This document shows, in pieces, positions 10,544-15,789 of a stretch of DNA of 64,000 bases; position 1 is the first letter of the stretch; each line of letters starts with the position of its first letter. The notes under the pieces were generated by a model. It did not search any database and was not told the origin of the DNA. It saw nothing but the letters and a program-made list of their open reading frames with translations. The stretch covers positions 43,152,001 through 43,216,000 of the forward strand of contig OX597824.1 of assembly GCA_951406725.2 (NCBI GenBank), given 5' to 3'. This DNA comes from Octopus vulgaris. Its lineage: Eukaryota. The position numbers and the translations under genes were made by a program.

Positions 10544-13092
10544 TTTGTAATCGTAAAATGTCTGCTCATTTTGTCTTGTTTGAGCCCGGGCGCATTCCTG
10601 ACGAACGATACATATTTTGCAAGTAACGAAATCGTATTGGCGCAATATAAAAACTTAATGGTTTACACTTCCGTATGGCTGTTTTATTTTTTTTACAATT
10701 CAAGTTAATTATTGCACATTGTTGCATACATCCTTCACCATTATGTTGATAAACATACACACATGTATACATATATTTGTGTGAGAGTGTTCTTGTAAAT
10801 GAATTTGTATTTGCTTATCTTAACATGTTTTGCTTTATGACAGATATGAGTATTGAAGCAAACCCAAAGCACGGATCTTTATATTTCTGCTGAAAATGAT
10901 AAATGTACTTGATTTACTTTTAGCCATCAAGTCAATATCCGGCTGCGCCAGGGTGTTTATGTATGTGCATCATGTATATATATTTGTATGTGTAAAGTAA
11001 CAGTTTTAGAGGAAAAACATTGGTTTCATATCTAGCGTGAATTAGGCATATCTTCAACTTCTCTAAACGATAGCTGTTCTCTGCAAAGAATGATATTTAA
11101 AAACACAAGAACGCCGGTGATAGGTGAAAAAATATTCCTCTTAAAAATTATGGCCGGGCGAGTTGTCTTCCTTCGCTTGATTGCTAGGTTTTCCAATTTT
11201 GATGTAAAAATTTCCGAAAATGTTGACAACTCCCCACGGCTTCCGTCCTGGAGTTCCGGCTGCCTCCTGGCTCATGTGAGTTCATAAGGATTAAATATCT
11301 TTCTGCTATACACAATTTACATAGCCTTGTTTCATTGCGATAGGATCCACAGAGACACACACACAAAGTACAGAATAAGATAAGAAAATACGTAATTTTA
11401 TAACTCGGCAACTGTTTCAGGAACCCCGGAGTTATGTAATAAATTGCAGAAGAAATGTGCAAAACGTCATGGGTATGTAACCAGTAACAAGTTATATGAA
11501 AATATTACTATAATTCTGGCTTTCCTCATCAAGAGAAAATTGGCAAATTTTGTTTGGTGACTATTGGTGTCTCTGTGGAGTTTGTACTAGCATACTCAAT
11601 CTTTATATTTGATAAGTTTTACATATGATATTATGTTTTTGGGCTTTACAATCCAAACTCTCTGATATCTTTTGCATAGATTTGTGTTCCACTAGAAAGC
11701 TACACCGAAATCAACGTTTGCTTCACAGATTACTTGAAGACTTCAAAGAAACCCGTTTTTCACAGGCCTTAAAATCTATATTCTATGAATTAATTTGCTC
11801 GTAATTTGTCCTTGTCTATCGGATTAAAATGCAGCTGCTGGCAGTATGTATGCAAATTTGATTCGCATAAACAGACGCGCGCATGCGCACATATGTCCAT
11901 ACACATGCACACACATATGTGGATTAATAAAATATATATTCATTAACTTCTCCTTTTGACTGAATGTTCGACGGGTTTTTTTTTTTTTTTTGCTCTTTTG
12001 TTTTGTTTTGTGCACCAAAAATATACAAACAATAATAGTAACAACAGCGGGGAAAATTATCCGCTTTTCAGATATTTATTTTCCGGCATTTCTTGGCTAC
12101 AACTTTTTGCTAGGGTAGCTTTGAGATTCTTAATGATTATTTTGTCGCAGAACCGTTTTAAGATTTTAGAATGAAGATTAATTCATATAAAAAAAATTTG
12201 CTGCTATTTTGAAAATTATGAAAACTAATATTGTTATTAAATAAAATTTTATTAAATTTTATTAAAACATACCTTGTATTGTTGATACAGGATTTTTTCA
12301 ATAAACTTGTGCTTTCTTCGCAGCTTTGAGATTCACCAAAGCAATTGAATAATACTGTTTCTTCTATTTTTTTTTTCAGAGCTGATTGCAACATTCATTT
12401 GAAAACTACAAAATAAACACGTAACTCCCACATTTGGGGAGTAATCTACATTTAAATTGTTGCATGATGTCATCCAGAAGCATTGCACTGATGACATGTA
12501 AACAGGTTAGAAAAACCAGATCAAAGAAGGATAGCAAAATATATATTTTGTTTTTAAATCCGAAAGCAACTAAAATATTCTGGTGCGGTAGAAGTAGAAT
12601 GTAAAATTTCCCCGCTAACTATACTTCAGTGAAAATTTTGAAGTTGGTTCAAATAATTTTGAAAGAGAAATAATTTAATATTTGTGTTAATTAGCTAATT
12701 TCGTGTTATTAAACTCCATTGCATACGCTTTCAAATTTGCTAAGGTTTCACTGATGCAATGCTTCCTGAGTGACCCTAGATATGCATTGATTTATTTATT
12801 ATTTTGTGATACAAAATATTCACAACTGCTCAGTGCAGCCTTATGTTAGAAGAGTATAGAGACTGATATACTTTTGCCTATCTGTTGACTAACACATATC
12901 ATCTTCCCGACCAAAATTTCGCTGAATCAAACATTCCCTCGACTGTACTTAATCTTTTGATATGTGCAATAGACCGAAGCCTTAACCGGTGCAGAATTTG
13001 CGTTTCCTCTACGCACAGATAAATATACACATACGCTTATGTATATATATATATGTATACACACACCCACACACCTCTCTCTCTCGAGATAT

Positions 13093-13271
13093 ATATATTC
13101 TCTAGCCTTCATCAGGTGTCTTGGGGAAATTTCGAACCTGGCTTCTCATTCCTAAGATATTTTTCTATGTTGTTGTTGTTGTTGTTGTTATTATTATTAT
13201 TATTCAGGTCACTGTCTGGAATCGAGCTCGGAATCTTGGTGTTAGTAGCCCACGCTCTTAACTACTACACC
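13093..13271 (-). mobile_element. tRNA-Arg-like SINE, family 4, 3'-truncated within the hammerhead-like tail
   Basis: Reverse complement of 13283-13511; carries intact CTGATGA (plus 13109-13115) but lacks the downstream CAGCC-GAAA. Confidence 0.85.
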
Positions 13272-13282
13272 CACGGACATAT

Positions 13283-13345
13283 GGCGTAGTGGTTAAGAGC
13301 GCGGGCTACTAACCCCAAGATTCCGAGTTCGATTCTAGGCAGTGA

Positions 13346-13426
<81 letters not shown>

Positions 13427-13575
13427 CAACAACAACAACGAAAAACACCTTAGGAATGAGAATCCAGGTTCGAAATTTCCCAATGACATCTCATGATGGC
13501 TGGAGGGTATATCAGCCGAAACGTTGTGTTAACAACAAACAAGATGAGGACAAATATCCGTCAATTGTAAAGAAT
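13283..13575 (+). mobile_element. tRNA-Arg-like SINE, family 4: tRNA head + (AAT/AAC)n linker + Penelope-type tail
   Basis: A box tggcgtagtgg, anticodon-like arm gggCTACTAAccc, aagattcc and B box gttcgattc resemble tRNA-Arg(ACG); acceptor stem absent; about 90 bp (AAT)n(AAC)n linker; unique tail. Confidence 0.85.
13485..13530 (+). ncRNA. Minimal type I hammerhead ribozyme motif, this copy with core mutation G5C (CUCAUGA)
   Basis: Stem I gacat/gtgtt; core ctcatga 13490-13496; stem II ggctg/cagcc; GAAA 13518-13521; palindromic AACGTT stem III; GUU site. Sibling copies at 13109-13115 and 15074-15080 supply canonical CTGATGA. Confidence 0.7.
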
Positions 13576-13727
13576 GCAAATAATAAATTCAAAGTAATTA
13601 TTCTTCTTGCATTACACCCAAGACATACACCATAAATAGTGTATAGAAAAGTACCAGGAAGAAACTTAGTTATTGTATACTAGAACAAGAACCTGACGTT
13701 CTCCCGACTCTGTTTTGCCAATATGTC

Positions 13728-14813: not shown

Positions 14814-14987
14814 CATACACACAAACACAACGGATATCTTTCAGTTTCCGTCTACCAAATCCATTCATAAGGTTTTGGTGGGCCCGAGGCTATAGCAGAA
14901 GATACTTGCCCAAGGTGCCGCATAGTGGAACTGAACCTGGAACCATGTGGTTGGTAAGCAAGCATCTTACCACGCAGCCACGCCTAT
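14491..14987 (-). mobile_element. CORE-like tRNA SINE, family 2, with internal TA/TG microsatellite
   Basis: Head ggcgtggctgcgtggtaag...ggttcagttcc, ggcaccttgggcaagt box, internal microsatellite, 3' half homologous to 56069-56250. Confidence 0.85.
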
Positions 14988-15034
14988 GTACACAGACACA
15001 CACAGACACACATATATATATATATATGTATACA

Positions 15035-15084
15035 AACACACACCTCTATCTCTCTCGATATATTCTCTAGCCTTCATCAGGTGT

Positions 15085-15087
<3 letters not shown>
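15035..15087 (-). mobile_element. Fragment of family 4 tail containing CTGATGA
   Basis: tattctctagccttcatcaggtgtctt is identical to 13096-13122 and shares its truncation flank. Confidence 0.75.
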
Positions 15088-15146
<59 letters not shown>

Positions 15147-15245
15147 TGTATGTATGCATGTATGTATGTATGTATGTAAATATATATACATAAGCACACA
15201 CGCATGCATGCACACACACACGCACATACATAAATGCATACATAC

Positions 15246-15305
<60 letters not shown>

Positions 15306-15789
15306 CATATATATGACAGATACATGACGAGGGAGAGAGAATAGAGAAATTGACAGAGCAAATATTAAATACTAGCTCGCTATTATCTATAACAGAGAAT
15401 CTAATGTATTTCATATATTTGTGCTATATTTGTTTTACAGATCGAAAATATTTTTGACGCTTTTGTCTCATGATATATAAATACAAATGCTTGTATTCTG
15501 CTGTGGATAATTTTTGTGCCACATTCTTGTAATGTAACAATAAATCAATGTTTAATAAGAGGATCTGTTTGAAATAACGTATTTCATGCATTCATGATGG
15601 CTGATTTTATTTCATTATTCATCTGCGTAAATCTTAATCATACAATGTGGAACCTATTGAGAGCTGGAATAAACAAAATGCATATTAAAAAGTGTGTCTC
15701 TACACGGTAGATGAATCTGCGGTAGCCAAGCCTTCCTTAAACCACTACCCCTCCATCATCTTATTTAACAAAGAATACATGATTTTATC

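Follow-up and report, generated by a model that had tools for sequence, protein, structure and literature searches.

Head-to-head copies of a tRNA-headed, SINE-like element in Octopus vulgaris, probably the terminal region of a Penelope-like element lineage

Short interspersed elements (SINEs) are defined by their dependence on long interspersed elements (LINEs), and the tRNA SINEs that carry a LINE tail are reportedly explained by the shared 3' tail model of Ohshima/Okada and of Kajikawa & Okada. Ferbeyre in 1998 and Laha in 2000 are said to have described the SINE-like elements Sm-alpha and Sj-alpha, and Lunse et al. in 2017 the minimal hammerheads of Penelope-like elements (PLEs). The present work concerns a stretch of 64,000 nucleotides of the Octopus vulgaris genome (assembly GCA_951406725.2, contig OX597824.1, positions 43,152,001 to 43,216,000, forward strand), referred to below as the window, which contains two decayed copies of a tRNA-headed element with a minimal hammerhead motif, placed head-to-head. 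This find is probably a pair of copies of a SINE-like, non-autonomous retroelement that is the terminal region of a PLE lineage, a partnership that is unusual for a SINE. A preliminary description, made from the window alone, had proposed either a SINE mobilized by Penelope machinery or a SINE/retrozyme hybrid, with a 3' end made by self-cleavage. The Penelope-linked, tRNA-headed SINE is supported by the results below; the self-cleaved end and the hybrid are not.

The closest precedents include the minimal hammerheads of Penelope elements and the proposal that retrozymes derive from PLEs. The former (Cervera & de la Pena 2014, PMC4209133) are, like the octopus motif, of type I, with an extra unpaired base between positions A9 and 10.1, a G10.1-C11.1 pair, and the combination of a long helix II with a short helix I; their helix III, palindromic (15.x-16.x), does not fold and implies an action as dimers. 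They are part of the PLE terminal repeat, and many are found as dispersed single motifs or as close pairs on opposite strands, as is the case here. The difference is that the dispersed copies in the octopus, instead of being anonymous "truncated PLEs", belong to one defined unit whose head is of the tRNA type and whose 5' end is discrete. Animal retrozymes (Cervera & de la Pena 2020, PMC7229834; Li, Clavereau & Pollet 2026 preprint) are also non-autonomous and hammerhead-bearing, and PLE machinery has been proposed for them; in the recent preprint, they are considered non-autonomous PLE derivatives. The octopus family also shows a few tandem arrays. However, retrozymes are defined by tandems and circular RNAs, whereas the octopus copies are mostly dispersed, bordered by target site duplications (TSDs) and provided with a tRNA-type head.

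Sm-alpha as well as Sj-alpha, elements of Schistosoma (PMC2770079, PMC6765202), share with the octopus family a tRNA-derived head of the RNA polymerase III (Pol III) type joined to a hammerhead, a short length, a high copy number and occasional tandem arrays. The schistosome ribozyme is canonical and detected by the Rfam motif, whereas that of the octopus family is of the minimal PLE type and escapes detection; moreover, neither a PLE partner nor a PLE insertion architecture has been reported for Sm-alpha (PMC2770079, PMC6765202). In LINE-tailed tRNA SINEs, a Pol III head is likewise fused to the 3' recognition region of the autonomous element that supplies the reverse transcriptase (RT). Here, on the contrary, the partner would be a PLE (RT plus GIY-YIG endonuclease) whose 3' region also holds the head, the ends would result from internal RT initiation at two sites, and the insertions are often double and inverted. 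Neither a PLE-dependent tRNA SINE nor the sequence itself was found in the literature, the repeat databases and the 1994 description of an octopus SINE lying outside the coverage of this search; the family may already be catalogued (Repbase, Dfam, SINEBase) without its ribozyme or partner having been noticed.

A search of the genome (2.8 Gb, 227 contigs) with the hammerhead module yielded at least 1,886 first-look candidates, and 30 loci were fetched for detailed comparison; the query carried a T at module position 26. The unit is composed of a tRNA-like head with A and B boxes, an (AAT)n(AAC)n microsatellite of ~10 to 500 bp and a hammerhead module of 140-185 nt, which ends in either ...AATAATGTA or ...GAACTGTA, the two 3' termini being separated by 33 nt. 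The consensus pieced together from the window copies in the preliminary description, GACAC-CTGATGA-A-GGCTGG-9 nt-CAGCC-GAAA-CGTT-GTGTT, is exactly the genome-wide consensus of the fetched loci. The corresponding 46-nt motif, GACACCTGATGAAGGCTGGAGGGTATATCAGCCGAAACGTTGTGTT, has 848 perfect matches in the genome and 12,160 with at most three mismatches, versus none for the reversed-pattern controls. In a Poisson reading, these counts correspond to ~3.15 changes per 46 nt, a divergence of ~7% and ~2x10^4 copies. The box CTGATGA and the GAAA, which are not found intact together in any window copy and whose separation was the first doubt raised beforehand, share one molecule in the consensus and its 848 perfect copies; hence, this doubt is removed.

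Head and module are one element and not two. Among the fetched loci, the start of the module (ATCGAAAAATACC...) always follows the microsatellite and was never seen without it, and the same head is present upstream of the microsatellite in all copies that are long enough. Perfect 34-mers from the head and from the module upstream of the hammerhead occur 1,081 and 2,868 times in the genome, respectively, and co-localize among the matches listed. The idea of a hammerhead module that homes independently to (AAT)n tails was rejected, as the module start never occurs without the microsatellite, the TSDs enclose head and module together, and their counts co-localize. A different sequence, "element B" (~330-600 bp), lies between head and module in the loci L004, L007 (L007:897-1470) and L019. 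It is a separate nested retroposon with a variable 5' truncation and the end ...CTCTCTCAC(TAA)n, which sits in the (AAT)n spacer in constant orientation, as if homing to matching microsatellites.

The insertions have a characteristic architecture. At 16 of the 30 fetched loci, two copies form a head-to-head inverted pair with the 3' ends outward, and the apparently single copies of L004 and L019 still possess an inverted arm of 15-22 nt. TSDs of 6-23 bp flank the whole pair (GTCAACTG, TCAACTATG, AAATATTCT, TCATTAGGAATTG and a 23-mer in L010); by script, they were detected in nine of the 16 pairs compared to 12 of 240 mismatched-locus controls, and more were recognized on manual reading. The copies lack a poly(A) or LINE-type 3' end. 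Their terminus is either ...GTAAATAATGTA, to which an extra AATAATGTA is sometimes added, or ...CATAATTCCTCATCTCTTAAATATAGAACTGTA, located 33 nt beyond, and this 33-nt tail is carried by exactly one arm, one being long and the other short, in all 16 pairs. Among the matches listed in three genome listings, 11 close divergent pairs were counted versus no convergent one within 1 kb. Partial tandems are present in L022 and on C9. Published PLE insertions are recognized by truncation at the 5' end, by partial tandem copies, by a copy, inverted and itself 5'-truncated, that adjoins the 5' end, and by a tail of 30-40 bp at one end only (PMC8557442). A PLE protein was found in vitro to cleave and extend the two target strands, with RT starting at two internal positions located on either side of the tail (PMC11167929). 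The inverted pairs with TSDs, the one-sided 33-nt tail and the partial tandems argue for insertion by Penelope-type machinery, as had been suspected from the window, and point to mobilization in trans by a PLE protein. To our knowledge, two start sites, priming on both strands and a tail on one arm have so far been known from one in vitro system. With ~2x10^4 short and easily aligned insertions, the family constitutes a natural record of Penelope integration, in which two RT starts 33 nt apart, both-strand priming and a tail that is almost always one-armed can be read.

Two different RNA templates for the arms of a pair, suggested by a mismatch at module position 26, were considered and dismissed as an artefact of the choice of loci, because the genome-wide C:T ratio at this position is 93:7 while the query carried T. 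An orphan 31-nt tail stands alone in unique sequence at L068:9125-9154 and looks like an insertion that came to a halt as soon as it had been primed at the distal start site. Another family sharing this tail was discarded as its source, as the sequence upstream is not repeated.

The unit is joined without interruption to a PLE reading frame. In L005, L007 and L015, a decayed PLE frame, a stop codon, a spacer of ~45 nt, the head and the module follow each other with an identical junction, and the three copies have three different 5' truncation points. The frame contains ...LAFLDVLI...VYRKPT..., then VYSIPCRCGRLYKGET, then ...HVWKNGDHLPQWDEVKIIDREHHWKIRKLKEAAHML... before the stop, and its end (...KEAAHMLGHNNLLSRPS...) precedes the head. 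The C-terminal part of the RT shares 36% identity (E~5e-13) with RT+GIY-YIG frames from the same genome. For the endonuclease part, the alignment is colinear but weak (E = 0.002), and Pfam made no call on it. Read through its frameshifts, the fragment has 53 homologues with RVT_1, one of them named a GIY-YIG endonuclease by its source.

The same order is found in relatives, for which the DNA around six homologues from two other public assemblies was compared. After the stop codon, a conserved TTAGGTTTATAAG...AAAATTCAC motif precedes a tRNA-like piece, followed by GGAAT(G/C)AGAAC ... GGTTCGAA(A/G)TTCC and by the hammerhead CTGA(T/A)GA-A-GGCCGG-9 nt-CGGCC-GAAA-CGTT-GTG..., then ...AAAGATGAGGACAATAGTCCG.... 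Within the terminal region of this PLE lineage, the tRNA-like piece is a component of long standing. The nearly full-length L075 has an A box (TGGCGCAGTGG) and a B box (GGTTCAATCCT) separated by a diverged spacer, and its hammerhead lies at the 3' end, which extends 60 nt past the predicted cut. A partial repeat of that end is located upstream; it runs past the 3' terminus into ...CAAGCCTCATCTCAAAAATTCCG..., the homologue of the 33-nt tail of the SINE, and on into leader and reading frame. L075 is also adjoined by an inverted arm, and L074 is a head-to-head pair of two copies that both bear a reading frame. The comparison of the tail with Penelope terminal repeats, which had been suggested as a check, is thus positive.

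The head contains an A box (TGGCGTAGTGG) that matches the box consensus 11/11 and a B box (AGTTCGATTCC) that matches it 10/11, with 33 nt between the two. About 14 of 23 heads start within a window of 11 nt, from -8 to +3 of the tRNA-like +1 (GCCCACG|GGCATATGG; GCCCACG|GGCAT), while ~6 are truncated within the head and three run further upstream. This accumulation of 5' ends, together with the two boxes, argues for a separate transcription start at the head, where transcription would be driven by Pol III. The short element with a tRNA-type head that was described from the window has both promoter boxes and a discrete 5' end. It is tentatively proposed, with a chance somewhat short of even, that the PLE lineage carries a conserved tRNA-type Pol III promoter module in its terminal repeat, beside the hammerhead, and that this repeat, which could thereby be transcribed by itself, was amplified as a true SINE. 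If so, this would be the first tRNA-headed SINE with a PLE, and not a LINE, as its partner.

The hammerhead consensus is of type I order. Helix I has 5 bp (GACAC with GUGUU), followed by the CUGAUGA box, one unpaired A (T in ~11% of the copies), a 6-bp helix II (GGCUGG with U-CAGCC) that has G10.1-C11.1 as its closing pair and a loop of 8-9 nt, and then GAA, A-CG-U, U17 and the cut. The core C3-U4-G5-A6-N7-G8-A9...G12-A13-A14 with H17 is thus present (CUGAUGA...GAAA, U17). An ACGU palindrome (AACGUU with its flanks) is found in the consensus, and CGTT or TGTT in relatives. Every published sequence hallmark of the Penelope-type minimal hammerhead (PMC4209133) is recognizable, in line with the assignment made beforehand. 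The lowest-energy fold of the monomer contains the 5-bp helix I and the 6-bp helix II (z = -1.9 versus shuffles); any catalytic activity is putative. Other minimal-hammerhead families exist in this genome: a pattern excluding the present family gave 542 matches versus 59 for the control (9-fold). Of the first 100 of these, 47 can form a helix II of 4 bp or more, in which the complementary sequences differ from match to match, and the bulged base is an A in 79. Examples are CTGATGA-A-GGAC-TAAC-GTCC-GAAA, GGGG-CAAAA-CCCC and GGGATAT-...-ATATCCC; a bulged base after A9 is seen in nearly all of these families.

Across the PLE lineage, an alignment of six partly decayed sequences shows that N7 varies and that, apart from this position, only G12 departs from the core, where two of the decayed copies have an A at a CpG. 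Loop 2 is free to drift, and helix II stays paired through an exchange of U-A to C-G. The covariation score (0.121 vs. 0.067) was reached by 11 of 500 shuffles. Cross-lineage covariation is weakly supportive of the helices. Covariation in the stems, which had been expected, is faint between lineages and absent within the family (see below).

Beyond the predicted cut, the genomic copies have a further 53 nt (short form) or ~95 nt (long form) of conserved sequence, which refutes a 3' end generated by self-cleavage after GUU. As the priming sites lie in this stretch, the retrotransposed template must be an uncleaved RNA. In agreement with this, catalytic mutants of a PLE hammerhead had no effect on insertion in vitro (PMC11167929). 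The ribozyme cut as origin of the 5' ends of truncated arms was also rejected (0 of 7). Tandem arrays, which would place two hammerheads in a single transcript, are rare. Two satellite-like ones on C7 (C7:9,523,852-9,524,860 and C7:11,043,067-11,044,471), made of module pieces, are composed of units of 83 bp and 87 bp, each with one hammerhead, 37 nt upstream and 16 nt downstream of the cut; at C25:33,647,286-33,647,893, a satellite-like 33-bp array comprises core and helix II only, and the partial tandems on C9 measure ~96 bp. Genome-wide, 44 tandem junctions contrast with the 12,160 near-intact dispersed motifs, and the supposed SINE/retrozyme hybrid fits only these few arrays.

In the proposed mechanism, an RNA would start a few bases upstream of the head, probably by the action of Pol III, and run through the module. 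The RT/GIY-YIG protein of the partner PLE would recognize the shared 3' module in trans and cut both target strands 6-23 bp apart, at AT-rich sites. Reverse transcription would start internally at either of the two sites, giving the short or the tailed end, and priming from both nicks would produce head-to-head inverted pairs with frequent 5' truncation. The hammerhead, lacking a helix III in cis, could form a double hammerhead through its ACGU palindrome, between two RNAs or adjacent tandem units. A cut at GUU|G would remove the priming region; in this scheme, the ribozyme would be an inheritance from the PLE terminal repeat, where it would trim the 5' end of the transcript, and it may have been retained in the SINE as a portion of the RNA recognized by the protein.

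A number of results weigh against this interpretation. Concerning the head, the Rfam tRNA model gave 14.7 bits (E=7), below the 29-bit cut-off, and ARAGORN recognized no tRNA or cloverleaf in it; since no tRNA model calls the head, the term "tRNA-derived" relies on the promoter boxes. The sense strand of the unit has no TTTT, which is not significant, as 56% of the shuffles are equally without one, and the missing Pol III terminator was dropped as evidence. One pair, known by its coordinates only, possibly has tails on both arms. As for the partner, an intact PLE of this genome was not recovered, and the only PLE-linked copies among the fetched loci are the three mentioned, which are decayed and older (~90% identity). 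The genome is rich in PLEs (at least 5,955 first-look GIY-YIG matches), and in one abundant family, to which many of them belong, a 781-aa RT+GIY-YIG frame is open in many copies and the terminal repeats measure 456 bp. This family was rejected as the partner, as its 38 loci have no similarity to the module and no hammerhead. It is located in L061-L068 (e.g., L061:1930-7300), at C16:20.83 Mb and in many more places. It has an overlapping upstream frame of 359-479 aa without a Pfam match, repeated TGATGACGTC (CRE-like) motifs and an (AT)n end; with terminal repeats 99.3% identical within one copy, it was apparently active recently.

The remaining adverse points concern the ribozyme. In the lowest-energy fold of the monomer, core bases pair with CGUU, and the symmetric double hammerhead, although feasible (-22.3 kcal/mol), is less stable than two monomers (-25.2). 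An unfavored double hammerhead fits the weak, protein-assisted activity published for such motifs. The Infernal search with the Rfam hammerhead models, another check suggested beforehand, found no match at E<=10 on an intact copy and nothing significant in the window or on one related PLE. This negative carries little weight, because the same search missed bacterial-type hammerheads. Within the family, no two-sided change was present in 31 copies, where 96.4% of the cells are paired, equal to shuffles; for the helix II pair C16-G31, the genome-wide counts (CG 2166, CA 157, TG 78, TA 6) give an odds ratio of 1.06, and covariation was rejected on this basis. The within-family test says little, because the neutral decay of dead copies predicts no covariation. 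Across the lineages, only three two-sided pair changes were counted in the six decayed sequences, a number reached by 35 of 500 shuffles. Separately, a metagenome scan for copies in other species returned only bacterial or phage-type hammerheads. Those of the contigs L069-L073 read CTGATGA-N-GGCTGG...CCAGCC-GAAAC, where helix II begins as in the octopus family, and lie upstream of small reading frames; Rfam in E-value mode made no call on the one that was tried.

The possibility that no separate SINE exists, and that the copies are 5'-truncated PLEs or solo terminal repeats with the tRNA-like piece as a 3' untranslated region, is considered unlikely. The head does lie inside PLE copies, PLEs are heavily 5'-truncated, scattered single minimal hammerheads are read as truncated PLEs in the literature, and the head is called by no tRNA model; the accumulation of 5' ends would then stem from a stop of the RT or from Pol II initiation within the terminal repeat. 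However, 5' ends falling so often within 11 nt, with only three of the 23 heads reaching the reading frame, speak against it, and so does the match of the A box (11/11) and the B box (10/11) to the consensus. Both boxes are also kept in a relative at 63% protein identity, in which the sequence between them has diverged. That the hammerhead is an inactive relic here, kept because the surrounding RNA binds the protein, is doubtful but has a greater claim: published PLE minimal hammerheads cleave poorly, cleavage of the green anole PLE in vitro needs the protein and is dispensable for insertion, and the predicted active dimer is not the favored fold. Against such a relic speaks the catalytic box, invariant across lineages except for N7 and the G12 of the two decayed CpG copies, as well as a helix II that keeps its pairing via two-sided change while loop 2 drifts.

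An animal non-LTR (long terminal repeat) retrozyme, with tandem transcripts cut into monomers and circles as transposition intermediates, would explain the arrays on C7, C9 and C25 and agrees with the 2026 preprint that ties retrozymes to PLEs. It is nevertheless very unlikely given only 44 tandem junctions versus ~2x10^4 dispersed copies, the TSDs, 5' truncation and ends 53-95 nt past the cut of the latter, and the fact that the cleavage site is the starting point of none of the seven truncated arms. A tRNA SINE of the ordinary, LINE-dependent kind, with a motif that resembles a hammerhead by chance, could account for the failure of the Rfam models and for the lack of intrafamily covariation, but is highly improbable. 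It is already contradicted by the PLE-specific insertion architecture, by the continuity of the unit with a PLE reading frame and by the conservation of the motif in related PLEs, where it varies at N7 and in loop 2 (with the loss of G12 at a CpG in two decayed copies); the absence of a poly(A) or LINE-type tail and the 9-fold excess of other minimal-hammerhead families in the genome also speak against it. The element is best regarded as a tRNA-headed, SINE-like unit that depends on Penelope and equals the terminal region of its PLE partner, and its anatomy, copy number, insertion architecture and physical and evolutionary link to PLE frames are established.

With a tRNA-headed unit whose entire length is common to the end of a PLE and which bears Penelope insertion scars, the concept of a SINE reaches a third class of retroelements. 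It also provides a concrete account of minimal hammerheads occurring as thousands of single copies and opposite-strand pairs and, if the terminal repeat was amplified as a true SINE, would explain at least part of their "massive and widespread" scatter in animal genomes. For annotation, such units would be filed as "tRNA SINE" or "unknown", and the inverted pairs can disturb assemblies. More speculatively, because one integration usually lays down two inverted arms, each insertion would be a ready-made long hairpin and a possible source of double-stranded RNA.

The window copies themselves (Table 1) were re-read, and the sequence-level description given beforehand, including the defect of each copy, holds. 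The plus copy had been placed at 13283-13575, slightly short at both ends, as it actually spans 13275-13587. Its hammerhead remnant reads GACAT-CTCATGA-T-GGCTGG-AGGGTATAT-CAGCC-GAAA-CGTT-GTGTT; besides the G5 to C change already pointed out, the bulged A is replaced by T and one C of helix I by T. The 3' end consists of degenerate AATAATGTA units, without the 33-nt tail. The minus copy (13093-13271) is arranged head-to-head with it and reads GACAC-CTGATGA-A-GGCTAGAG before decaying into a microsatellite. It retains helix I, the CTGATGA box, its bulged A and, of helix II, the 5' half, and has lost the GAAA, as stated beforehand, together with the cleavage site and the 3' end. No window copy has an intact hammerhead. 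Of the three copies originally counted, two are real; the third is a local duplicate and not independent, as 13027-13122 and 15000-15087 are 82% identical and share the same decayed flank. A 21-mer has three matches in the window versus none expected.

Table 1. Parts of the element copies in the window (positions are those of the window).
Feature	Position	Strand	Basis
Plus arm, tRNA-like head	13275..13352	+	97% to head consensus (BLAST)
Plus arm, A box TGGCGTAGTGG	13282-13292	+	sequence reading
Plus arm, B-box-like AGTTCGATTCT	13326-13336	+	sequence reading
Plus arm, internal (AAT)n(AAC)n microsatellite spacer	13350..13438	+	sequence reading
Plus arm, 3' module, short form	13439..13587	+	94% to consensus; 3'-end comparison
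Plus arm, hammerhead remnant	13485..13530	+	sequence reading; intact consensus 848x in genome
Remnant, helix I	13485-13489 with 13526-13530	+	
Remnant, core box, mutated CTCATGA	13490-13496	+	
Remnant, bulge	13497	+	
Remnant, helix II	13498-13503 with 13512-13517	+	
Remnant, GAAA	13518-13521	+	
Remnant, ACGT palindrome	13521-13524	+	
Remnant, predicted cut	13525/13526	+	
Minus arm, 3' module positions 1-76	13093..13168	-	BLAST 92% to family consensus; sequence reading
Minus arm, internal (AAT)n(AAC)n spacer	13169..13201	-	sequence reading
Minus arm, tRNA-like head, 5'-deleted, abuts plus arm head-to-head	13202..13271	-	91% to head consensus; alignment
Fragment, helix I + CTGATGA + GGCTAGAG	15057..15087	-	duplicate of decayed minus-arm end

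At 12990-13090 and 15000-15330, the window is densely filled with compound microsatellites of the types (TA)n, (GA)n, (TG)n and (CATA)n. They lie around the outer end of the minus arm and have eroded it, an observation that would fit the reported association of PLE insertions with microsatellites. Another tRNA-headed SINE, with the CCTTGGGCAAGT motif typical of CORE-SINEs, is located at ~14855-14990 on the minus strand of the window, and similar copies flank several of the fetched loci (L004, L005 and L015).

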